Of a DNA stretch of 64,000 bases, positions 11,773 to 27,602 are shown one piece after another. The first letter of the stretch is position 1; each line of letters starts with the position of its first letter. The position numbers and the translations under genes were made by a program. The stretch lies in assembly GCA_037447605.1 (NCBI GenBank), contig CM074817.1, positions 1,984,001 through 2,048,000 on the forward strand. Direction: 5' to 3'. The notes below the pieces were generated by a model. It searched no databases and was not told where the DNA came from. It saw only the letters and a program-made list of their open reading frames with translations. Source of the stretch: Zygnema circumcarinatum SAG 698-1b (lineage: Eukaryota; Plantae; Zygnematophyceae).

Positions 11773-12078
11773 GGTAATGAATGGACCGGACACTCAAATT
11801 TGACTCAAACTCTGTACGAATTGGAGTACTTTCTAACTGTTTAGGGTTTTTTAGGGTTTTAGACTTTCCCGTCTGCCCATCCGTTGTTGGTCCATTGACA
11901 GTTGGAAATGTGCACTGAGTATACAGCATAACTGTTTGAGAAGATTGAGAAGATGTCAACTAGCCATAAGTTAATTCCTATCTTAGTCCTTTGTTTAGGT
12001 GTCTCCAGAACATACAAAACCCCATTTTCCATGAATGTCTGTATTAGGGGCTAATAAAAATGCTAAAAAACTCCTCGG

Positions 12079-12114
12079 TTTTTAGGGTTTTTAGGGTTTT
12101 TAGGGTTTTAAGGG
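12079..12114 (+). repeat. Telomere-like (TTTTTAGGG)x3 plus one variant unit
   Basis: Read directly from the sequence. Confidence 0.8.
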
Positions 12115-12119
12115 CAGAT

Positions 12120-12450
12120 CTGCCACGTTTCGCTGAACCTCGAACGGATCTGGTGTCATAGTCATGGCTTGTCACGTTAACAACATTCTTTCTCCTTGTA
12201 GCAAACCACTGTCCCGTGTGCAGTCGCCCAAACACGACAAAAATCAAGGGCCACGTCGCCGCCTCCTCGAGTCCATGCACTTGAAATCAACCCAACAAAA
12301 CATGCAACGCCAATGTTCCCATGCACAATGTCATGGGCACATGGACATGCACATAAATTCTCTAGGCCTCGATTCGCTGCCACGTCACATGCATGCAGGA
12401 AGCCACCGCCACGTAGGCATATTTCTGCAAATCAAGATGCGCCACGTGGC
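12120..12450 (+). promoter_or_regulatory. RY (CATGCA) plus ABRE/G-box cluster upstream of bicupin A
   Basis: CATGCA at 12274, 12301, 12320, 12346, 12388 and 12392. GCCACGT at about 12122, 12250, 12379, 12408 and 12440. Function is inferred. Confidence 0.6.
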
Positions 12451-12592
12451 AGACAACATGGCCGGAGTTAAGCCGCGGAAACCTGCCGTTCCGCAGAACA
12501 GAATGGCGCCATCCCTCCAAAAATAGTGTACTGCAGAGCGGCCGACGGCAAAGTGGGGGAGGGAGGGAGGGAGGGAGGGAGGGAAAGCGACG

Positions 12593-15500
12593 ATGGCAGG
12601 ATGTTTTTTCATTCTTGTTTTAGGGTTGGTGTTGGTGACTGGAGCGTTTTCTACGGGTGAGAAAGAGTTTGTCGCCCCTCAGCCTTCGGAGATAGCGAAG
12701 GGATCTGGGGGTTCCGTGCGCGTCTGGAGTGAAAGTTTCAGTCAGATTCAGGTGCAGCTAACACTAGTTCGAAATGTTATTCCATCCTTCTTTTGTGTTT
12801 CTGCAAATTTTCCTTCCTGGAAGAATAATTTTTTTTTTAACGCTAAAATTATTTGTGAGAGTGATGGGGTGTGGAAATTAAGGACGCCCATCTTGGCGCT
12901 GCAATCATCACCGTAGAGCCACGCTCTCTCGCTCTCCCGGAGTACACTGCCTCTTCCACTCTCGCCTACGTGCTGCGCGGAAAAGCATGCGTCGGCCTGA
13001 TCACCCCTGTCGGCATTCCCACCTCCGTCAGGTCCTCGGCTCCGCTCTCTTCACTCCCACCATCTCAGGCCATGCACGTCCATGCATACACATGCATGTT
13101 GATTCATCTTGCATCATCCATCTCAACTTGTTCTCATGTCTGCGTGTATGCACTTGTCTTACATGACATGGCCATGCATGGTGATGCATGTCACAAAGCC
13201 ATGGCGGCATGGGGGGGGGGGCGTTACAGGCACATCTCGGAGGGCGACGCGTGGGCCATCCCGGGCGGCTGGGTGCGGTGGATTTGGAACTACGACCAGG
13301 TGCAGCCCCTCGCGCTGGTCGCCGTCGCGGACACTTCGTATGGGCCAAAGCGCGGCGCGTACACGCCCTTCCACCTCATTGGCGCGCAGAAGAAGGAGAC
13401 TGGAGGGCTCATTCACGGATTCAGGTCAGTGTTATAGAAGTATTTTTGGAGCAGGGTGGACGAGAATCGTTTGTTTTGTTCGGTTTCAGGTTTGACAATA
13501 ACGCAAAATCGTTGAATTTGCAAGGTCATTGGAAGAGTTGATCTTGTGGGATGTACTGCAGCAAGGAGATTCTCGCGCATGCGTGGAATGTGGAGGAGGA
13601 GGATGTTGAAAAGCTTCTGGCGGGTCAAAAGGAAGCAGGCTTTGTCAAGTTGGAGGTGAAGCCGAACTTGCTGTTTCCCTGTCATGTTATTTTAGTGTCC
13701 GAGTTCTTAACTCGTCATTGAAACATGCTGCATAGATAATTGTGATAGTTTTTATATAATTTGAACATAAGCAGCTACAAATCGTTCAGCCTACTGTTCA
13801 CAATCATAGGCTTCCAGTCTCCAAAATTGCAAAACGGTATACTCTTCAATTAATTCTGAGGTGAGCGTTTCCCTCAAATTCAATGCTGAGCAATATTTGT
13901 GCATATTACGAACCGTTTGCAGGAGGAGCCAGACTTTGTGAAGGCCTTGCAAGAGAACAGTTGGTTTGGCGATTTTGCGTACAATTTGCTTAAGTCTGAG
14001 CCCGAGCTGCGAGTGAAGAACGGAGGGACTCTCTCTCTCCTCAACGCCTTCAAGCTGCCCGTCTTGAAGCAGCTAAATCTCGCCTTGGGATTGATCCGTT
14101 TACAGGTATTGCCACTTCCCCCCTTTGAAATGTAGAAGTTGAAAATGTACTGTATTAGATTCTGATTATGATTTTTCCTGGCAGTGTTTGACCTCATAAT
14201 GGTTATTTTGCTGTGGTGGCGGCAGCCTGGCGCACTGCTCGCCCCTCATTACGTGGCGAATGCTCCGCGTTTCATGTACGTTCTCACGGGAAAGGGACAC
14301 GTGGAAATTGCTCATCCCGATGGACGTGTTGCTCTTCGTACCGATTTACAGGAGGGCGATGCTGTCGTCATCCCCTCGGGCTTCCCTGTTGCGCAGGTGA
14401 AGGAAAATCACTCATTCTCCACTTCGTCACAAAGCTCTTGTACTGTTCCCACTGCATATATGCTTCTCCTCTTTACGAATGTTTGCGCATTCCGACACAC
14501 GGTTTTGTTTTGTTTTCTTGTCAATTTTTTTGTTAAAAAACGTTGACCATAACCCTCACCCTCACCCTCACCCTCACCCTCCCTACCCCTCCCCCCTCCC
14601 CTCCCTCCCCCTCCCCTCCCCTCCCCCTCCCCTCCCCTCCCCCTCCCCCTCCTCCCCTCCTCCCCTCCCCTCCCCTCCCCTCCCCTCCCCTCCCTCCCCC
14701 TCCCCTCCCTCCCCTCCCCCTCCCCTCCCCTCCCCCCTCCCCTCCCCCTCCTCCCCTCCCTCCCCTCCCCTCCTCCTCCCTCCCCTCCCCCCCTCCCCTC
14801 CCCTCCCTCCCCTCCCCTCCCCTCCCCCTCCCCTCCCCTCCCCTCCCTCCCCTCCCCTCACCTCCCACTCCTCCCCCCTCCCCCTCCCCTCCCCCTCCCC
14901 TCCTCCCCTCCCCTCCCCTCCCCCCTCCCCCCTCCCCTCCTCCTCCTCCACTCCCTCCTCCCCCTCCCCTCCCCTCCCCTCCCCCCTCCCCTCCTCCTCC
15001 CCTCCTCCCCTCTCCCTCCCCCTCCCCCTCCTCCCCTCCCCCCTCCCCTCCTCCTCCCCCTCACCCCCTCCCCTCCCCCTCCCCTCCCCCTCCCCTCCCT
15101 CCCCTCCCCCTCCTCCCCTCCCCTCCCTCCCCTCCCCTCCCCTCCCCTCCCCTCCTCCTCCCCTCCCCCTCCTCCCCTCCCCTCCTCCCCCTCCCCTCCC
15201 CTCCCCCTCCCCTCCCCTCCCCTCCCCTCCCTCACCTCCCTCCCCTCCCCTCCCCCTCCTCCCCTCCCCTCCCCCTCCCCTCCCCCTCCCCTCCCCTCCC
15301 CTCCCTCCCCTTCCCCTCCCCTCCCCTCACCCTCACCCTGTGTCTTATCCTCTCCTCGTTGCAGCGTGCCGATGAGAATGAGCCGTTCGAGTTCCTTGTG
15401 TTCGCCGGGTCGTCCCTTCCCGTCCCCGCCTTCCTCGCGGGGGCGAACTCCCTCTACAAGGCGCTGCCCCTCAAGGGGGCCGCCGCCGCCTTCAACGTCG

Positions 15501-15803
15501 ACGACGAGCTCGAACAGAAATTTCGTTCCAGGAGGACTCGCGATGTGGCCATTTTCCCGCCGCGGGGGAAAGAGGGCCACAGTGGGCTCTTTGAGTGGGC
15601 TGTAAATCACATGCCGAGTGGTTTCCAGGTATGCTGGAGTTGTTAAGATGATGCGGTTGGTTAGGTTAAGTGCTTAAAAGATGAGGTTTCTGGTTTTCTG
15701 GGTTTGATTGTGTGCTAATTGTGTGCATGCGGTGAAGGAGGACGCAGAGAAGTCCTTGAAGGAGGAGTTTGGTATTCGCCTGCCTTCAAGTGGTGCAGAT
15801 TAG
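12593..15803 (+). CDS. Legumin-like (11S globulin-related) bicupin A with signal peptide, 8 exons
   Basis: Exons 12593-12751, 12883-13031, 13230-13424, 13562-13655, 13923-14105, 14226-14396, 15365-15628 and ~15738-15803. Motifs GAAIITVEPRSLALPEY, GFSKEILAHAW, KNGGTLSLLN..LP and FLAGANSLYKAL fit the At1g07750/At2g28680-type bicupins. The hydrophobic N-terminus is MAGCFFILVLGLVLVTGAFS. Confidence 0.9.
14545..15340. repeat. ~800-bp almost pure C/T (CCCCT/CCT-type) tract filling intron 6 of bicupin A
   Basis: Read directly. It generates the spurious Pro-rich and Gly-rich ORFs in the track. Confidence 0.95.
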
Positions 15804-17172
15804 AGAATAGCCCCTTCTTTAAGGAGCAGACGCAAAGTCACCGCCTCTGCATGCATGCGGTTGAACGAGTCGTTTTTTGGACAGTTTTGGTCAACTTTCG
15901 GAGCTTTGTAGTTCTTTCCGTTCTAGGGTTCAGCGACAAGTATATTTCTACCGGATGCTTGTACAGTAACGACTGTATAGTACATGGCGGATGGGATTTG
16001 AATTGCGATTTTGAATCCCGACGTTGAGATCGTTTTGCATTTGTTGCTGTGCTTGATGGGTCCTCCCCATGTAATGAACTTGTTTTTTTCGTGTCCACTT
16101 TACATTGCTTGTTTTGAATAAGTTGTGCTGCAAGAAAAGCAAGTGGGGGAATCGCTCGTTTGAGGCAGACGAGTCTTTTTAGTGTTGGGGATAGTCGTAC
16201 ACATGTTCCCTAATGCTCCTGTTGTATGTACATGCATACGCTCCGAAAGGGTCGTGAAAAAATTCCGAATGCTAAGCTTAGAATTGGCGCAAGAAATGTG
16301 TATAGGAGTAAAGTCTTTGCTTACATTGTAGCCAATCAAGCACAAATCATTCATTCATTCATTCATGGACAAATTCAACATGGATAAACCACGAGGAAAG
16401 GTCACAAAGGTCCCAAAGCCGAATGAAAAACCCTACGAGCTGAAATCTGCTCCTATGATAGCCCATCCCTATGCTCACTCTTTTCCCGTGTGCAAACTTG
16501 CAACGCAATGTACTTCAAGACTGGAACAATCTGCAAAGAACCCATCAGCCCTAAAGCCCCACGAGGGCTCTCACTAGCTCCCTAGGCCCATGGCGCGCCA
16601 AGCTTCACCTCACCTCACCTCTCATGTCTCGCCGCCCAACAACAATAACAACATCGAGGAGCGCCGATCGACCGGCCGGCGCGGAAAGCCGTCGTCTTCG
16701 GTAACCGCGGCCGACCGCGCCGACCGATCTCTCGTCAGCACCCTGCCGCGCCACGTGGCAGGCGGTCCCGCGCGGCCTCCAACGGATTCAATTCGCGGCG
16801 ACGGTCGGTCGCGAACGGCCGGTGGCGTCGGTAGTCGTACGGGAAAAAGTTTACACGTGGTGTCGTTTCATTCGTTACCAAATATTTTGCGCGTGTGTCA
16901 GAGAATTTTCATTCGCTCCGGGCGGCCCGCGGCTCCCTGCTCTGCTCGCCGCGGAGGGCCCTCGGCCACAGCGCGCCGAGCGCGATCGGCGGCCGCCGCG
17001 GACATAATATGAAGGCGGCCGCGCGGGAAAGGAGAGAGAGGGAAGGCGAGTGAGAGAGGGAAGGAGGGAGAGAGAGAGAGAGGGAGGGAGAGTGAGAGAG
17101 GTAGGAAGGGGGAGAGATAGAGGAAGGGAGGGAGGGAGGGAGGGAGGCCGCCACCCATTCGTATCATCCGCC

Positions 17173-18604
17173 ATGGATTCTGCACTTCTGCAGCTGCTTA
17201 TTCTCCTCTCGGTTTCCGTGTGCAGGTGAGGTTGACATTAATGTTGGGGAGATGAGAGAAAAATCGAGAGGGAGGGATCAATTTCATATTACGCAATAGT
17301 ATTTTTTTTTATTAAATCATAAGTTTCTGACAAGTATTCCCTACTCCCTGCAGCAGCCATGGCCGGGGAATTCCTGCTGAAATTCCGCAGCGTCTGCTGA
17401 ACGCCACTCTCGCCAACCAAGTCGTCCGCGCTACCGCCACCACGCCGACAATTGTATTCGACGCTGGCGACCCTGCAAGTGTGCACATTTCGGGCAGCTC
17501 TGTCACGATCACTCTCACGCAAACCTCCAGTAAGCAGCCCTCCCTGCCTCCTCTCCGCCAGAGAGAGAGAGAAAGAGAGAGGGGGAAGAGTGAAGCTTGG
17601 AAAGTATCATCATGCACAGAGAGGGGAGAGAGAAGAGCAGCAGAGTTGAATGCAATGTGAAGCTTTCTTTGACGTGGAATGTATGGGAGGGTGCCAGCTG
17701 GAAGGACCCGCACGAGCGTGAGGTACCCGCCCGGGACCACTCTCTCTGCGAGCGTGAAGTGCCCCGCAGGGGATACAAGGTGAGAGAGACTGTATGACTA
17801 TTTACTGGTGTGGGGAAATCTTACGAATGTTGAAAAGGTATGTTAAGCGTGATTGGTTTAGGTTATGCGTTGTTTCATTCACTACTGAGCGGGCCCACCT
17901 GTCTTTGCAGCGGCTTGGTATCGTCGCTATACCTTTCTTACTTGGAGGGGAGCAAGCAGGACGAGATAGACTTCGAGTGGTTGGGGAATGCTAAAACTTC
18001 CGTACAGCTCAACTACTATGTCAATGGGTAGGCCAAACCTCATCCTCCTCCCTCCCACTCTCGGCTCTCGGCCTCCTCTCACTCTGCTTCCATCTGCCCT
18101 TCCCCATCATTTCCTTGGGTTGCCGTTGGGCTGCAGGGTGGGGGGCCATGAGAAGATTGTGCCTCTCGGCTTCGACTGCTCCGCAGCATTTCACACATAC
18201 ACCATCTACTACGGCACGGACCGGCTCACGTGAGACTTCCCCCCTGCACCAGTGTGAAGAGGGAGGTGGAGTGGGAGTGGGAGAGGAGAGGGAGAGGAGA
18301 GGGAGAGGAGAGGGAGAAGAGAGGAGGAGAGAGAGAGAGAGAGAAAGAGGAGAGAGATAGAGGGCAGCAATGGAGGATAGGCTGATTGAAGCCGTATTGG
18401 AAGGGAGGGTGCAGGTGGTGGGTTGACGGCAAGCAGGTGTACCAGGTGATGGCGGTAACGGGACAGCCCTTCCCGACGCAGTCAATGTATTTCTATGAGA
18501 GCATCTGGGATGCCTCCGCCATCAATGGCGGGAGCTGGGCAGGCACGGCCAAGTGGACGGCGCCATCCTACACGGTGTCATACAATAGCTTTTCCGCGAC
18601 TTGA
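17173..18604 (+). CDS. GH16 endoglucanase of EG16 type (XTH-related, lacking the XET_C extension), 236 aa, with signal peptide
   Basis: Exons 17173-17225, 17354-17529, 17698-17779, 17911-18027, 18137-18229 and 18415-18604 join in phase (711 nt). It has the catalytic motif DEIDFEWLG and the EG16-like motifs KCPAGDTSG, YLSYLEG, LGFDCS and SIWDAS. Confidence 0.88.
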
Positions 18605-19159
18605 TCGCTCTATTTATTTCGGCATTCTTTTGTGCGATGCAGGTCGTGAGGTGCAGCATGCTCCTTGGCAAGGCGGAATCAGTGATAGTTCTTTGGGGTG
18701 ACTTAGCTTCTCGGGCTTTGTAAATCTTTAATAATTTGTCGTGGGCAACAGGCAGGATAAGCTTCAGAGGGATGCTCCGTGTTGTACAAGTATTTATGTA
18801 AAAACGAAACAAATGGACATGGCTGGTCTATCCCTTACAATGTCGATGTCCTTCTTATGTGTATTCCAGTGGTTTTNNNNNNNNNNGAAGGTGTAGGCTT
18901 TAAGATTTAAGTTTAAAGTTTAGGGTTTTGCCTTTCACGACGAAGTGCGGACGTGTCTTCCAACGATTGGCCGGTTCTAAACCCTACACATGTGGACCCC
19001 ACATCCCCCACATCACGGTACGGTGCTTTGAACACCAGTTGCTATTCGCTGTTTGAGTTTGAGTTTGAGTTTCAGTTGAAGTTCAATGAATTCATTCCCC
19101 ATCGAAGTGCATCGGATACGACAACCTCGCCCGCCCGAAGGCCCCAAACGCCGCCCCGC

Positions 19160-19310
19160 CACTGCTGCCACGTCACGCGCCGTACGCCAACGACCTGCCA
19201 TCCCGGCTGCCACATGGCACGTTCTCCGGCAACCAACGAGCCCGCCAAGTGCCACGTAAGACTCCCATTGGTCCACGTAGGCACAGTTTGCATGAGCGAC
19301 CACGACGTCG
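19160..19310 (+). promoter_or_regulatory. ABRE-like cluster upstream of bicupin B
   Basis: ctgccacgtca, ctgccacatggcacgtt, gtgccacgtaag, gtccacgtagg and one reverse RY (ttgcatga). Confidence 0.5.
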
Positions 19311-19543
19311 CCGTTCCGCGGAACGGCGAACCGACTTTTCCGCCAAGTTCAGAAGTGCCCCCCCGTTCCGCGGAACGGGTGTCCGTTAGCGAAGGGCCCG
19401 ACCACCCGGGATCGTATATGTGCAGCGCTTCCCGGCGAGCAGGAGGGAGTTAAAGCGGGCAGAGAGGGAGAGAGAAAGAGTGGGAGACTGAGGGAGTGAA
19501 AGAGAGGGAGAGAAAGAGAGAGATAGAAAGAGAGAGAGGAGAA

Positions 19544-20582
19544 ATGGCGCGCAGTATGACCCTCTTGGTTGTAGGATTGGCCCTGGTGGCGGGCGCACGG
19601 GCATTGGGGGAGAGCGAGTTTGTGGCGCCGCAGCCTTCAGAGGTCGTGAAGGCTCCGGGGGGGTCTGTGCGCATTTGGAGCGAGAGTTTCCGCCAGATTC
19701 AGGTGAGGAGATTGGTTTCCTTTGCTTACCTTATTGAAGGAATTAGATTGTTTTTGTTTGAGCGGATGTCTAGGTGGGTCAGCGTCAACAGAGTCAACAC
19801 GTGATGGCGTGGGTTGGTTTTTCTGTGTAGAAATGTTGGGAATAATTTAAAATATTGCAAAAATTCTCGTGTGAAGCACGATATCATGATTGTGACGCAT
19901 GGACCAATGTGATGGCATGTGAATCTAACGATGAGTGGGCATTCTCTGCGAATGTTTTTGGTTGTGTTTCCGAATTGATCTGAACTGAGGTGATGCGCAT
20001 GCTGATATTACTTGCGCTGTGCGTGCGATCCAGGACGCTCATCTCGGTGCCGCCATCATCACAGTGGAGCCGCGCTCCCTCGCCCTCCCGCAGTACACCG
20101 ACTCGCCCACTCTCGTCTACGTCCTCAGCGGCAGAGCGCGCGTCGGCCTCATCACCCCCGTCGGCATTCCCACCTCCGTCAGGTGCTCCTCCCCATAGTC
20201 CCTCCATCTCACTCCATGCACGGCCATGCATCGCCATGCATCGCCATGCATCTGTTGCAAATGAGACATTTTCATGTCGTCGTATATATATTTGTCTTTT
20301 AGCTTTTATAAAATCTTGTCTTTTGTGGCCATGTGCTTTACACCTGGCTGCTGCCCCCTGCTCAGGCTAGATCTATGCTGCCACTTATTTTTGTCGCTTA
20401 GGACACTGTACAAGCACCCTCACTTAATAGACACTTCCTTCTTGTGTCATTTGTTCTCCTCACTCTTCGTGTGCATGCAATGTCTATTCCTTCCATCTCA
20501 ATGGCATCCTCGTCAACGTGTTCCTGCACTCTTGTCCATGCGTGAACTTCAAGATCATGGCCATGCATACACATGCATGTTC

Positions 20583-20613
<31 letters not shown>

Positions 20614-22670
20614 ATCATCCATCTCAACTTGTTCGCATATCTGCGTGTATGCACTTGTCTTACATGACATGGCCATGCATGGTGATGCATGTCACAAAGC
20701 CATGGCGGCATGGGGGGGGGGGCGTTACAGGCACATCTCGGAGGGCGACGCGTGGGCCATCCCGGCCGGCTGGGTGCGGTGGATTTGGAACTACGACCAG
20801 GTGCAGCCCCTCGCGCTGGTCGCCGTCGCGGACACTTCGTATGGGCCAAAGCGCGGCGCGTACACGCCCTTCCACCTCATTGGCGCGCAGAGGAAGGGGA
20901 CGGGGGGGGTTATCCATGGCTTCAGGTCAGTGTTATAGAAGTTTTTTCTTATTGGGATGGAGAGAGAGGGGGGGGGAGAGGGAGAGAGGGAGGGAGAGGG
21001 AGGGGGAGAAGGAGAGAGGGAGAGGGAGAGAGGGAGGGGGAGAGGGAGAGAGGGAGGGGGCTAAGGAGAGAAGGAGCGAGGGAGGGGGAGAGGGAGAGAG
21101 GGAGGGGGAGAAGGAGAGAGAGAGGGAGGGGGAGAGGGAGAGAGGGAGGATGTTGGTTAAACATATTGTTCAATCGTGTTGGGTATGCAATGCAGCAAGG
21201 AAATTCTCGCGCACGCGTGGGATGTTGAGGAGGAGGATGTTGAGAAGCTGTTGGAGGGTCAGAAGGACGCAGGCTTCGTGAAGCTGGAGGTGAAAAACGC
21301 ATATTTTTATGTTTCGAATCTGCCCTCGTGTTTTGCTATACTCTGTGTAGCGGATGCTCGAACCATAATCTATGGTACTTTTTTAAAATAAAGCGACGTA
21401 AAAAGGTGGTTCTCCTCTGAGGGGCATACAAACATTTCAGAATTCAGAAGCAAGACGTCTGTGCCATAAAAATTGCTCCAAAGAAGAACTGTGACCTCTG
21501 TTTTGGTCCAAGTGCTGACAAACTTCGCACGTGTGAACTTGCAGAATGAGCCGGAGGGCTTGAAGGGTGCAAAGAGCAACAGTTGGTTCGGAGACTTTGT
21601 GTACAACTTAAGGGAGGGAGAGGAGGAAGTGAGAGTGAAGAACGGAGGGAGCCTCTCTCTCCTCAACGCCTTCAAGCTGCCCATTCTCCGACAGATCGGC
21701 CTCTCCCTCGTTCTTGTTCGCCTGCAGGTAGGCCATCAACTATCGACCATTTGGTTCCATAACCAGCTTTCAGATCTGAGTTCAACAGATCTTCATTCTT
21801 GCTGCATGCAATGTGTGGTGAACATGGGAAGATACGGAATAATTTCTGCTGTCATTGCTTATTTGTTTGTTTGTTTGATTTCATGTGATGATTGTTGGCA
21901 GGCGGGCGGGTTGTTGGCCCCCCACTACACGAGCAATGCTGCTCGCCTTCTTTACGTCACCAAAGGAAAGGGCCGAGTGGAAATTGCCTATCCAGATGGT
22001 CGGGTCGCTTTGCGCACAGACTTGGAGGAGGGAGATGCAGTCATTGTCCCCTCGGGATTCCCTCTCGCAGTGGTGCGTTTATCCAACCACTCATTCCCAT
22101 GCTCCTGCTACAATTTAACCCACCAAACCTCAATTCCAATTCTTCTACTCCAATGCTTATCTTTGTCAACATGTTGGCAATTATGTATGCAGCGAGCTGA
22201 CGAGAACGAGCAGTTTGAATGGGTGAGCTTTGCCGGGTCACCCCTCCCTATTCCTGCCTTCCTTGCGGGGGCAAACTCGCTGTATAAGAGTCTCCCTTTG
22301 GAGTTGAGTTCGGCTGCATTCGGAGTGGAGAGGGAGTTGGAGGAGAAAGTCCGAAATCGGCGACTTAAGGACTTCGCCATTTTCGCTCGCCGAAATGAGA
22401 CCGGCGGAAGGGAGGGGCTCGGAGGCTATGTCAACGTTTTCAAGGTCGGAGGTCGAAGCTTACAGAGTGCTCAATTTGCTGTTTTGGATGTGGGTTTTTG
22501 GGTGCGGGTAATAAGTCATGTGAAACAGGGGGGGGCGTTTGAATGGGAGTCATCTTATGTAGTTTTTATTTAAATTTTTTTCTTTTGTTTTGGTGCAGAA
22601 GTTTATCGAGGACGCTGAAAATGCCATCAAGGACGAGCTTATTCGCCTTCCATCCAACAAGGCCGAGTAG
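19544..22670 (+). CDS. Legumin-like bicupin B with signal peptide; tandem paralog of A, 8 exons
   Basis: Exons 1-3 have the same lengths as in A (159, 149 and 195 nt) and all intron phases match. The last exon, 22599-22670, encodes KFIEDAENAIKDELIRLPSNKAE*. Confidence 0.9.
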
Positions 22671-24174
22671 AGGGAGGAGAGGTTGAAGGGGTACTCGTAA
22701 AGTGTACAATCACGTTCGCACGGTTATGAAAAAAGGGGCGATTTTTGGGTGTCTATACCGAGAGGAAATCTCCTATTGGCCCCAGTTTTGAGAGAATGCT
22801 CGAATTGTACGAAGTGTGTGAGTGTGTGTTTTTTTTTTTTTTATAAGTCGGTTGTAACAGTATTCTCGTGGTTTGAGATTTTAGGCAGTGCTTCAGAAGC
22901 AGAAGAGAGGGCTATCAGGTTTTTTGCGCTTGAGAAAGCTTTGAGTGGCAGGGCCCCGGTTGTATTCCAGCAGCAGGAGGCTTGAAGCTATCTACCCCTG
23001 AAGGGGTTTTTGTGCAATTCAGTTTTTTTCCAAGGCATGTGACTTTCACAATGGGATTTTCTACAACGGTGTTTGCTTGAACCGTTGTCTTTTTGTCCTT
23101 CCCCCTTTTTGAAGACCTCGATGTTTTCGATTTTCGTTCATTGAAGTTGGAAGGTTGTATGAATGGAAAAATGTGATGAAGAGAATGTGACCTCGAAGTC
23201 CTGCAATGAGTACATGGGGCTCGATCCTTTGAAGCTTTCTAGAAGAGCGGTATCTCTCGAGATAGAATGCTTCGATTGGAGAACCTTCACAACCCGCAAA
23301 ATTGTACTATGGGTTCGACTTTAACACAAGGCAGGTGAGAGCAGAGGACGTTTCTGAAGACTTAAGAGAGAGGCAGACCTTCACAGGCAAAAACAAGAGT
23401 GACAAGGCAAGACTCGAATACAGTTGTAAACATTTGCCATAAAACATTCGAAAGCGATGAATTAAATTACAAAAAAGGCTCAGTTGCAGTCTCACGCAAC
23501 TGAAGGGATTACAGAAATCAGAAAGCTACATCTAACCGTCCATTAAATTTTACTGCCATGCTTTTTCCTGCAGAAAGGAACCCCATAAACACTCCTCACT
23601 GCAGTCCCTGCGCCTCCACTTCCTTTGAAACAAGAACAACCAAAAGCAATCCCGACGGGGATCTCAACGCCACAGAGAGGGAGTGGGTCCGTTTCTCCGT
23701 TCTATTCAGGGCAGGGGGAGTGAGATATGTTCAACATCCCTATCTACCTTCCCTCCTTCTCCTGCTACTCTGCCTCTCTGCTTCTGCTAGCTCAATCGGG
23801 AGCAACCTGCATTAGACGAAACAAAACATGTTAAAAGTGGAGACAAGAGCAACAAAGAGAACGAGGTTAACCCACGACGAGCTTAACGTGTGCTCTACTT
23901 TCACCATAAAGAAAGGTCCCATCATGTTGATCATGGGCAGGACATGATCTCAGCAACCAAACTACGATGATGCCCTACAGTCTGCAACAAAAGGTAAAGA
24001 CGTATCTGACAAAACTGGAAAAGGAACATTACGCCTTATTAAGTACTATCTGTTATACTCCAACAAACGTTTATTGAGTCGTAAATGTCACAAGCTTATC
24101 CAGCTCGTTGCCATAGGATATGGGAACTGTGATTTAGCCAGCCAGCTGCCCTCACAAATTTGCTTTGAATGTGG

Positions 24175-24870
24175 TCAATTACTGTTACTTTTTATGTTCG
24201 AATGAATGCCGGCATTTGACCCTCTGATCCCCCCCCCCCCCCCCNNNNNNNNNNCCCCCCCCCCCCCCCCTCCTCTCTCACACCTTAGACCTCTACTATT
24301 CATCTGCAATTTGAAGGGTTGCATGTAAGCCCGCGCACCTTTCATAGGGGGCGGAAGACAAAATCGGTCGGGAGGAGCGATGACCATTATGATCTCAGGA
24401 ACTCCCAAACGCCCAACGCCGGAGTGCTGTCCATAAATGGGCTCGTGCAGATTGAAGGATATATCGTTAGGTACAAATGGTATAGTGCTCGGAAAAGGAA
24501 CATCTTCACTATTTTCAGAATTTGAAGTTTCGTCTGCGGGATATGTCATCTCTTGCAGCCAGACTTCTGTAAGTTCACAGTGGCCAAAATGTACATTGAA
24601 AGGAGGCATCCTGAAGAGCCTCATCAAATCCCAACTTGCCGGCTTTCTGCTGTTCAACATTTTCAGATGGCCCTCCGGGAACGCCGTATTTCCTGGCTTA
24701 AACACAGGCCGTAGTTTATTTCTTGGATGCAGGTAATAGGGAATCAGAATGTAGTCATAATGTGGAGAAGGTCTGCCATTGCACGCCTCCTCAACTTTCT
24801 GAGAGTTTCCGCGCGATTCCTCGTCTGGGTTTTCGCCCCCTGCAACTATATGATCCGTATCCACAGCCAT
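24175..24870 (-). CDS. Uncharacterised ORF (~200 aa of non-repetitive sequence); true 3' end uncertain (N-gap, possible splice)
   Basis: A long open frame with protein-like composition (YDYILIPYYLHP..., HFGHCELTEVWLQEMTY). No family recognised. Confidence 0.45.
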   Translation of the reverse strand: MAVDTDHIVAGGENPDEESRGNSQKVEEACNGRPSPHYDYILIPYYLHPRNKLRPVFKPGNTAFPEGHLKMLNSRKPASWDLMRLFRMPPFNVHFGHCELTEVWLQEMTYPADETSNSENSEDVPFPSTIPFVPNDISFNLHEPIYGQHSGVGRLGVPEIIMVIAPPDRFCLPPPMKGARAYMQPFKLQMNSRGLRCERGGGGGGXXXXGGGGGIRGSNAGIHSNIKSNSN

Positions 24871-25260
24871 TCTAGAAAATCAATTCTGTAGGTCAGGAAA
24901 TCAGTTGTCCCGACTACTCTGAAAATACCCCTCTACTCTGCTTTTATCGTCTCTCCTCTCCTCCAATTGGCCCCTCAATAAGTCTGCTAGAAGGAAAGTC
25001 GAATTGCCTTCTCCACCTACTTTCCTGTTCCGTTTTCCTAATACTACATAAAAAACATTCAAATTGGAACCCCTTCTCCTCACACGTTCAGTACGAGGAG
25101 GATACCAACCACACTCTTGTGAATTGTCAACAAAAGCCTCCTGAATTCGCAATCAACACCTCAAAATATCGCCATTGTTTCTCCACACAACTCTAAACAA
25201 AGGTCAACATTCTACACCTCACTCTCCCCTCCCCTCGCTCCTCTCCTACCCTCCCCCCCT

Positions 25261-25614
25261 TCACTTCTTGTCGGACGCCTTCCCCCCTCCTTCCCCCGTA
25301 GTCGACGACTCCGCCTCGTCTCCTTCCTTCACAGGCGCCTTCCCCTCCCCACCATCTCCCCCCTCTGTCCCCTCCTCCTTTCCCTCCCCCTCTCCCGTTC
25401 CTCCTCCCTCTCCCCCTGCCGCTCCCTCTCTCTCTAACCCTCCCTGCCCCTCTCCGTCTCCCTCCCCTCTCCCCTTCCCCGCGTCCCTCTCCCTCGCCTC
25501 CCTCTCCTTGAGCGCCGCGTAGTACTGTTCCGGCACCGGCCAGCCGTAGGAGGTGACGGTGAGCGCCGCCACGAGGAAGGCGAGCACAACCAGTACGGTC
25601 AGTGCCTCCGCCAT
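25261..25614 (-). CDS. Small secreted Gly/Glu-rich hydrophilic protein (117 aa)
   Basis: Start context gccATGG, hydrophobic signal-like N-terminus MAEALTVLVVLAFLVAALTVTSYG, a TATAA ~75 bp upstream and an ACGT-rich promoter at 25770-26040. Confidence 0.6.
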   Translation of the reverse strand: MAEALTVLVVLAFLVAALTVTSYGWPVPEQYYAALKEREARERDAGKGRGEGDGEGQGGLEREGAAGGEGGGTGEGEGKEEGTEGGDGGEGKAPVKEGDEAESSTTGEGGGKASDKK

Positions 25615-25769
25615 GGCAGCATCCCCCGCACGTGCGGCGCCCCTTCCCCTTGTCAGAGAAAATCAAAAACCACTGTCCTCGGGTCGACCTTATAAAGCGG
25701 TCGCCGTAACCCGTTCCGTGTACACAGTTAGACTGAACTAGCGTGGGATTCAACAGTTCTATGTGGGGA

Positions 25770-26040
25770 ACCAACGTTTACATGTTCGGGGTCAAGACGT
25801 GGCAGGTTTTTCCCGTACAGTTACTTGACGTGGCAGAATTTGGAAGCGCTAAAATGTCGGTGGCCATGCAGCGGCACGTGCTGGAGACTGCCACGTGTGA
25901 GTCGTTGACACGTTTGCACGATTGAGACGGCGCCACGTTGCGGTTATCGCTGGATCTGGTCGGCACGCGTGTGGAAATCGACCGTGGGGGCGCCACGTGG
26001 GCAGAAGCTATCCGCGGGCAGCGTACGAACAAGACGTGGC
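25770..26040 (-). promoter_or_regulatory. Dense ACGT-core (ABRE/G-box) cluster upstream of the 25614 ORF
   Basis: At least eight ACGT cores in ~270 bp, several as GACGTGGC or GCCACGTG. Confidence 0.5.
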
Positions 26041-26101
26041 CGCCTCTCCGCCGCGGCGCTTCCCGGAGTGTACGAACGTACGGCCATACTAAAATATGGT
26101 A

Positions 26102-27602
26102 CAGTAGAACCCCCTAATATTTTCGCCATGGTTTCAGCAAATATGGGGGCGAAAATCTTGGAATTTGCAATATATGGGATTCCGTGTTAACAAGAGGGCA
26201 GTATGATGTTAGAGTCCGGCCTACGGCCGTACTGTTTCCCTCTGTACGGAATCGCATGGCCGCCCGACGAGCTCTATTGGTGCCGTACATTTACCTACAC
26301 GAGTTCCTATTGGTGCCGTACTTTACCGTACGATTTAGAGATGTTTACCGTACTTACCGTACAGCGGAATAGCGTGACCCATGTTTGAAATTTGTTGTGT
26401 TCAACAGATGTTGTATTGTAAATTAGGTCAGGTTAGGTTAACACCCCTAATATATTAACACAGACTTACCGTACAAAAAGTGGTTTTGGCAAAATCGGGG
26501 CGAATTTCTTGGGGATGCACTGTACAGGGTGGAAAATATTGGAAAATGATACAGCGGCCCCACTTTTTGGATATCGGCGCCCCCTTTTGGGAAAAAATGT
26601 ACTTTTTTTGGCTAATCAGCCCCCCCCTTGGATCTTTCGGGAGGAGAGATCTTGTAGACAATCGGACCCCGCGCCTCGCGCGCAGGATCCGACCGTGCAC
26701 CGACGTACGGCGCCGCGCATCGCGGCGTGGCCCGCGAGATGCGGCGAGCCTACGGAAAAGTTGTCCTCACCTGACCCGTTTGGGTCAGAGGTTGCCACGT
26801 GGCAGTCTGCCACTGACAGCCCTGCTGCCGGTCTCCCATGCCGATACAGTGGACCCCCATAATATTTTCCACCTTGTACAGTGCGTCCCCAAGAAATTCG
26901 CCCCGATTTTGCCGAAACCACCTTTTTGTACGGTAACTCAATGTTAACGTATTAGGGGTGTTAACCTAACCTGACCTATTCCCCAATACAAAATCTGTTA
27001 ATCGAAACGGATTTCAAACATGGGTCACGCTTTTACGCTGTACGGTAAGTACGAATAAAATCTCTAAGTCATACGGTATACGTACGAAACCAATAGGAGC
27101 TCGTGTATCTAAATCACAATACGATACGATACGATACATACGAACAGACATGAACTCTAACATAATACCGCTCGCCTATTGGTAACACGGACTATATATT
27201 TTCAAATTACAATATTTTCGCCCAGTATTTGCCGAAACCATGGCGAAAATATTATGGGGGTCCACTGTATCGGCATGGGGGACCGGCAACAGGGCTGTCC
27301 AATGGCAGATTGCCACGTGGCAACCTCTGACCCAAACGGGTCAGGTGAGGACAACTTTTCCGTAGGCTCGCCGCATCTCGCGGGCCACGCCGCGATGCGC
27401 GGCGCCGTACGTCGGTGCACGGTCGGATCCTGCGCGCGAGGCGCGGGGTCCGATTGTCTACAAGATCTCTGCTCCCGAAAGATCCAAGGGGGGGGGGGTG
27501 ATTAGCCAAAAAAAAAAGTACATTTTTTCCCAAAAGGGGGCGCCGATATCCAAAAAGTGGGGCCGCTGTATCATTTTCCAAAATATTAGGGGGGGTCTAC
27601 TG
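26102..27602. mobile_element. Composite non-autonomous Tc1/mariner (pogo-like) MITE/foldback element with a nested copy at 26847-27267
   Basis: Outer TIRs CAGTAGA(A/C)CCCCCTAATATTTT are flanked by TA (26100-01, 27603-04). Inner TIRs CAGTGGACCCCCATAATATTTTC are flanked by TA. It has long internal inverted arms and no transposase. CAGT termini with TA target sites are characteristic of pogo/Emigrant-type elements. Confidence 0.85.

Follow-up and report, generated by a model that had tools for sequence, protein, structure and literature searches.

An old tandem pair of 11S-globulin-like bicupin genes with seed-type promoter motifs, and its secretory-type neighbours, in Zygnema circumcarinatum

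Do four neighbouring genes with signal-peptide-like starts in Zygnema circumcarinatum SAG 698-1b, located at positions 12120 to 26040 of a 64,000-nucleotide stretch of contig CM074817.1 (assembly GCA_037447605.1, 1,984,001 to 2,048,000, forward strand; this whole stretch is called the window below), make up one gene cluster, or did they come to lie side by side in some other way? The initial annotation had tentatively read them, in the order bicupin, EG16, bicupin and secreted hydrophilin, as a physically linked maturation module. The explanation that fitted best, with a probability of roughly 0.6, was that the locus is composed of (i) an old tandem pair of 11S-like bicupin genes (bicA and bicB) carrying seed-type motifs, (ii) an unrelated secreted glucanase gene of glycoside hydrolase family 16 (GH16) between them, and (iii) a small lineage-specific gene driven by abscisic acid-responsive elements (ABREs), rather than a dedicated conserved cluster. 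Adjacency would then result from tandem duplication, in a genome rich in ABRE-type promoters, and a single maturation module for the four genes was not established by the sequence comparisons. Gene structures, family assignments, motif counts, duplication age and purifying selection were computed directly.

The bicupin genes bicA (12593–15803, + strand; 426 aa) and bicB (19544–22670, + strand; 424 aa) were modelled by tblastn with algal homologues and by a search for in-frame GT–AG pairs, and each was resolved into eight exons: 12593–12751, 12883–13031, 13230–13424, 13562–13655, 13923–14105, 14226–14396, 15365–15628 and 15738–15803 in bicA, and 19544–19702, 20034–20182, 20731–20925, 21196–21289, 21545–21727, 21902–22072, 22193–22444 and 22599–22670 in bicB. 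The two models shared identical intron positions, GT–AG introns and zero internal stops, and their exon junctions matched those of spliced RNA-seq contigs of a relative (P0001, Logan RNA assemblies). Database, family and structure searches were run exon by exon, without the joined spliced proteins; the joined models were used locally only, for the paralog alignment, Ka/Ks (nonsynonymous to synonymous substitution rates), hydropathy and tblastn searches of the window and of the fetched loci. Cupin_1 matches were found in the N- and C-terminal exons of both genes, and the family profile aligned across both domains. The profile built from alignment A1 of the algal family matched 11S globulins with E values of about 1e-49 to 1e-40, 7S vicilins with 1e-28 to 1e-19 and bacterial oxalate decarboxylase with about 1e-17, and single bicupin exons from the window likewise had 11S proteins as their top matches. 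The designation as bicupins was thereby kept, with the correction that the products are 11S-globulin-like rather than generic bicupins. A word search with the bicB read-through open reading frame (ORF) returned four matches and one with the P0001 protein returned a further one, which indicated that the family is poorly sampled in that index. Intron 6 of bicA, about 970 bp long, consisted mostly of a (CCCTC)n microsatellite (14553–15339) with 300-aa Pro/Ser-rich pseudo-ORFs on both strands.

Compared to 11S seed globulins (glycinin, cruciferin and amaranth 11S), the two algal bicupins displayed the same arrangement of a predicted signal peptide plus two Cupin_1 domains, with a best profile E value of 1e-49; they likewise had no metal-ligand His and kept the conserved Asn at the acidic/basic cleavage position. 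Alignment inspection found the cupin metal-ligand positions without His in both proteins, so neither is an oxalate oxidase- or decarboxylase-type enzyme. The differences from the seed proteins were as follows: (i) the bicupins come from a seedless alga; (ii) the cleavage-site Asn was followed by Ser in bicA and bicB, while the algal relatives P0001 and P0005 had Asn–Gly, as 11S globulins do; (iii) the cysteines of the inter- and intrachain disulfides were missing, bicA having two Cys in total, one of them inside the signal peptide, and bicB none, leaving 0–1 in the mature proteins; and (iv) a short extra last exon (15738–15803 in bicA, 22599–22670 in bicB) encoded a conserved IRLPS-containing tail, common to the P0001 transcript. 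This tail presumably resembles the NPIRL vacuolar sorting determinant. Since the 11S disulfide cysteines are missing, the bicupins are 11S-like and not canonical legumins, and a storage role is only putative. The best explanation, covered by the same joint estimate as the whole reading, is that they are predicted 11S-globulin (legumin)-type, non-enzymatic proteins of the secretory pathway.

The sequence comparison of bicA with bicB revealed DNA similarity in the exons only (71–86%), apart from one tract, and promoters that no longer aligned. The tract (13109–13446 versus 20610–20947, + strand) was 338 bp long with 96% identity, ran from the 3′ end of intron 2 through exon 3 into the beginning of intron 3, and was assigned to gene conversion. 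Nei–Gojobori Ks was about 0.8–2 outside the conversion tract and 0.14 inside it, and Ka/Ks was about 0.1–0.2; the pair is an old tandem duplicate, both copies of which are under purifying selection. No relic copies of the locus genes were found elsewhere in the window. Tandem-duplicated bicupins in a non-seed streptophyte have a parallel in the hornwort Anthoceros angustus, in which bicupins were expanded by tandem duplication and linked to drought (PMC7027989), while the present locus has only two copies, which are very old and have an unrelated gene in between. A literature search on cupins or 11S globulins in streptophyte or zygnematophyte algae returned no relevant paper.

The bicupin promoters carried motifs of three kinds. 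The bicA promoter block (12120–12452, + strand) contained six GCCACGT-type ABRE/G-box cores and seven RY motifs (CATGCA), the latter packed into 124 bp (12274–12397; Poisson p about 3e-10) in which TRF called no tandem repeat; across the window, CATGCA occurred 77 times versus 30 expected. The bicB promoter (19165–19377, + strand) contained GCCACGT/CCACGT cores (19165–19310), a single RY motif (19289) and the palindrome CGTTCCGCGGAAC twice (starting at 19312 and 19364). RY motifs were also found in intron 2 of bicA (13071–13190, + strand) and as arrays in intron 2 of bicB (20215–20691, + strand), the latter including the period-10 tandem CCATGCATCG in 3.9 copies (20214–20252); these intronic arrays, which are in part a period-10 tandem repeat and in part lie within the conversion tract, may be B3 sites within an intron or may be no more than simple sequence. 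The initial annotation's RY motifs at the bicupins therefore stood for the bicA promoter and for intron 2 of both genes, but hardly for the bicB promoter with its one motif. The third element was a palindrome: the 13-mer CGTTCCGCAGAAC of the bicA promoter (12487–12499, + strand) was shared with the bicB promoter only, and all five matches to CGTTCCGCRGAAC in the window (0.16 expected) lay in the bicupin promoters, at one site in bicA and two in bicB (19312–19325 and 19364–19377). Although the promoters no longer align, CGTTCCGCRGAAC is a candidate for a retained, pair-specific regulatory element. Neither the palindrome nor the RY arrays were shared with the GH16 or small-ORF promoters. The union of RY motifs with ACGT cores in these bicupin promoters resembled the legumin box plus G-box of 11S genes.

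The gene between the two bicupin copies (17173–18604, + strand) had six exons (17173–17225, 17354–17529, 17698–17779, 17911–18027, 18137–18229 and 18415–18604) and encoded 236 aa with Glyco_hydro_16 (PF00722) matches and the catalytic motif EIDFE (ExDxE) in exon 4. It contained no XET_C, the C-terminal extension of xyloglucan endotransglucosylase/hydrolases (XTHs): the last exon matched GH16 only and ended at 18604. Against solved structures, the GH16 exons matched EG16 (5sv8 and 5dze) at about 5e-8 and XTH at 0.02–0.9; one exon was slightly better against Bacillus licheninases, and exons 2 and 3, searched singly, matched no solved structure. The likeness to EG16/EG16-2 (VvEG16, 5dze; poplar EG16, 5sv8) thus comprised the GH16 fold, EIDFE, the missing XET_C and a length of about 217 aa without the signal peptide. 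Canonical EG16s have no signal peptide, whereas one is present on charophyte EG16-2s, in Klebsormidium on five out of six (Shinohara and Nishitani, PMC8711696), and exon 1 of the window gene encoded a hydrophobic, signal-peptide-like start by the heuristic used here. The gene is accordingly read as probably EG16-2-type and not as a canonical EG16, a refinement of the EG16 call in the initial annotation, which was right as to family and closest relatives. As such it would add a signal-peptide-bearing EG16-type member to the sparse intermediates between bacterial glucanases and plant XTHs.

The fourth gene was a small ORF (25264–25614, − strand; 117 aa) whose product would begin like a signal peptide and continue into an acidic tail rich in Gly and Glu. 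Its promoter (25689–26040, − strand) contained the TATA-like box TTTATAAG (25696–25689) and seven ACGTGKC cores (25797–26040), and its ATG lay about 80 nt past the box in a good context (gccATGG). The first 45 codons had a G+C content of 0.91 at third codon positions (GC3) versus 0.44 at second positions (GC2; p about 3e-6), a bias that matched and exceeded that of the verified window genes (GC3 0.67–0.73; intron G+C 0.42). Past residue 24 the product had 30% Gly, 20% Glu and a grand average of hydropathy of −1.48, a composition within the definition of hydrophilins (Gly >6%, with high hydrophilicity). Residues of about 36–79 were encoded by a degenerate GA-rich repeat (25377–25507) like that of the leaders and introns of neighbouring genes. 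Pfam, a word search, HMMER against 1.84 billion representative proteins and a feature search identified no relatives. The Gly-rich hydrophilic composition resembled hydrophilins and secreted glycine-rich proteins, and the ABRE-dense promoter resembled that of many late embryogenesis abundant (LEA) genes; by contrast with hydrophilins and LEA proteins, the small ORF belonged to no LEA or other Pfam family, had no relatives found and consisted in part of microsatellite-like DNA. A secreted hydrophilin had been proposed here, and its composition and signal-peptide-like start agreed with that proposal, while its orphan status and the overlap of its body with a GA microsatellite did not. Its start is very likely coding, while coding of the Gly/Glu tail is uncertain.

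Signal-peptide-like starts on all four genes, as the initial annotation had claimed, were borne out by hydropathy plus a (−3,−1) small-residue heuristic: each product had an uncharged 10-residue stretch within its first 17 residues, with a mean Kyte–Doolittle value of 2.9–3.5, and then small-residue (−3,−1) sites, the candidate cleavage sites of the bicupins being near residue 20. The window contained 388 ATG-initiated ORFs with 60 aa or more; outside repeats, such a start occurred in just four of them, namely those of bicA and bicB, the small ORF and an intronic read-through. A homologue in Closterium had its true first exon upstream of the annotated start, and this exon encoded a signal peptide (L001 9603–9758, CANJKZ010000971.1). 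The annotated Closterium bicupin P0002 missed this true first exon, and P0003 looked fused or mis-called.

The run of four was interrupted by an extra ORF (24178–24870, − strand; 231 aa) between bicB and the small ORF, which the initial annotation had not listed. It had no signal peptide, its GC3 of 0.48 was atypical for the coding style of this genome, and an assembly gap in a homopolymer (24245–24254) left its C-terminus undefined. For this ORF no Pfam family was matched, its AlphaFold model (predicted local distance difference test score 35) had no confident fold, and a search for terminal inverted repeats found none; a feature search gave a weak lead to a hAT dimerisation domain (0.87).

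How far the four promoters share a control was judged from the ABRE and G-box words. ACGTGKC occurred 53 times in the window versus 6.6 expected, an 8-fold excess, and is a favoured word genome-wide. Its clusters lay at seven places, three of which were the bicA, bicB and small-ORF promoters, while the other four were at 28.2, 31.5–31.9, 40.6–40.9 and 43.4 kb; the initial annotation had itself cautioned that ABREs alone are unspecific. The 500 bp upstream contained six ACGTGKC for bicA, seven for the small ORF, two for bicB and two for the GH16 gene; the counts of bicA and the small ORF were reached by 0.7–1.5% of 500-bp segments and those of bicB and GH16 by 11%. The GH16 G-boxes (16750–16859, + strand) comprised GCCACGTGGC at 16750–16759 and CACGTG at 16854–16859, and by plain ACGT this promoter was at background, 32% of all 500-bp segments having as many. 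ABRE-rich DNA upstream of all four genes, as first proposed, was therefore true of bicA and the small ORF and moderately so of bicB, but not of GH16. The 8-mers common to all four promoters all came from one extended ABRE, the 9-mer CTGCCACGT, which had 10 copies in the window versus 0.25 expected. Eight of these lay in the four promoters (12120, 12377, 12444, 16753, 19165, 25797, 25828 and 25888) and the other two at 26797 and 28207, with none in the clusters at 31.5, 40.6 and 43.4 kb (binomial p about 1e-10; Fisher p 0.011 versus other ACGTGGC sites).

That the four genes form one co-regulated maturation/desiccation module of a dormant spore or zygospore, in which one chromatin domain or a shared bZIP/B3 input would turn on storage globulins together with an enzyme of wall remodelling and a protectant protein, appears unlikely. 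Such a module would agree with the signal-peptide-like starts, with the concentration of CTGCCACGT in all four promoters, with an ABRE density about 2.5 times higher inside the locus than outside, and with the real bZIP- and B3-type motifs of the bicupin promoters, RY plus ABRE being the known control logic of seed storage and LEA genes. However, two of its members are duplicates of each other, which leaves three independent genes; the GH16 promoter, with only two G-boxes and without RY, is not ACGT-rich; further ABRE clusters lie elsewhere in the window; and the run is broken by the extra ORF and by an assembly gap. Two bicupin loci of Closterium shared neither the neighbours nor the motifs: within 10 kb of the gene nothing matched GH16 or the small ORF, and no ABRE cluster or RY array lay around it, so the synteny expected of a conserved module was not recovered in this one distant species. 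A different reading places the bicupins outside the cell, as extracellular or wall-associated stress or defence proteins, with G-boxes that reflect light or stress control of a general kind and RY motifs that are incidental simple sequence. A signal peptide alone does indicate the secretory pathway and not necessarily the vacuole, the proteins lack the cysteines for the 11S interchain disulfide, the RY array of bicB intron 2 is partly tandem repeat, and G-box words are over-represented window-wide; yet the RY block of the bicA promoter is no tandem repeat and is too dense for chance, the proteins are clearly most similar to storage 11S globulins, and the IRLPS tail, with its presumed resemblance to NPIRL, is conserved in the relative's transcript. 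We regard this extracellular role as improbable.

It is rather unlikely that the small ORF is not coding as drawn, the GA tract being a 5′ leader or intron of another transcript or the ORF being the first exon of a longer gene. The lack of any relative in the searches given above is in keeping with that, as are the overlap of its middle residues with a GA repeat of the kind seen in the neighbours' 5′ leaders and introns, the openness of all three frames across the GA-rich part, and an in-frame donor/acceptor pair that links it to the next ORF. Against it stand the GC3 of the first 45 codons, which is the typical coding bias here, the rarity of such a start among window ORFs, the ATG context and its distance from the TATA box, and the GC3 of the next ORF, unlike that of host genes. 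Several points weigh against the preferred reading of an old 11S-like pair with unrelated neighbours: the Closterium comparison covered ±10 kb in one distant species; the signal-peptide calls came from a hydropathy heuristic; the stop of the small ORF lies inside a good donor (GAA|GTGAAG), making an in-frame join to the next ORF possible and mis-modelling with it; and the occurrence of CTGCCACGT in the four promoters hints at a shared input more specific than a generic G-box. Because CTGCCACGT was found post hoc, it is moderate evidence for a common bZIP input, and as a shared extended ABRE it keeps the idea of co-regulation alive at about one chance in five.

Under the preferred reading of an old tandem pair with unrelated neighbours, each bicupin copy has its own promoter, with repeated GCCACGT bZIP sites (ABRE/G-box) and the pair-specific palindrome GTTCCGCGGAAC, the unrelated, putatively secreted EG16-2-type endoglucanase gene sits between the copies, and the small lineage-specific gene, about 2.6 kb past bicB and beyond the extra ORF, would be expressed from its TATA box and dense ABRE block. 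Regulators, expression timing and final protein location are what we infer here: stress- or dormancy-activated bZIP factors would activate each gene on its own by binding its ABREs, and B3 factors may add input at the bicupin RY sites. The products would enter the endoplasmic reticulum; the bicupins might then assemble as storage-like globulins, the GH16 enzyme would cut wall beta-glucans, and the small protein, with its acidic Gly/Glu-rich and presumably disordered tail, would be secreted or membrane-anchored.

Textbooks treat seed storage globulins, together with their RY/ABRE control, as features of the seed. In an alga, 11S-type genes that have kept ABRE repeats, a palindrome and RY arrays since an old duplication could offer a handle on the pre-seed role of this regulatory logic, for which dormancy or desiccation of resting cells are candidates. 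Weak as a gene cluster, the locus would be useful as a promoter set for bZIP and B3 factors. A far-reaching and unlikely proposal is that RY/B3 plus ABRE/bZIP wiring was already in place on 11S-type globulin genes in a streptophyte alga, before seeds and before the ABI3/FUS3/LEC2 clade, and that in resting cells it activated the storage-like globulins jointly with a wall glucanase and a small protectant. In a published survey, neither chlorophytes nor charophytes yielded ABI3/FUS3/LEC2-type genes (PMC5379062).

The window was nuclear eukaryote DNA with GT–AG introns and plentiful GA/CT microsatellites, which gave rise to many meaningless long ORFs. The genes flanking the locus included those for an aldo/keto reductase, a Ppx/GppA phosphatase, an RRM protein and a PPR protein. 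Two assembly gaps fell within the locus, one (18877–18886) in the intergenic region from the GH16 gene to bicB, separated by 273 bp from the GH16 stop and by 658 bp from the bicB ATG, and the other, named above, in a C homopolymer of the 3′ part of the extra ORF; all four coding sequences, along with the 500 bp proximal to each, were free of both gaps. A nest of foldback inverted repeats, resembling miniature inverted-repeat transposable elements, bordered the small-ORF promoter (26100–27600), with arms of up to 196 nt, 98% complementarity and palindromic G-boxes in the arms. Just upstream of the bicA promoter, a telomere-like repeat GGTTTTTAG was present in four copies (12077–12114), and a TTTAGGG-like piece was found upstream of bicB (about 18915–18930); both telomere-like pieces resembled telo-box elements.

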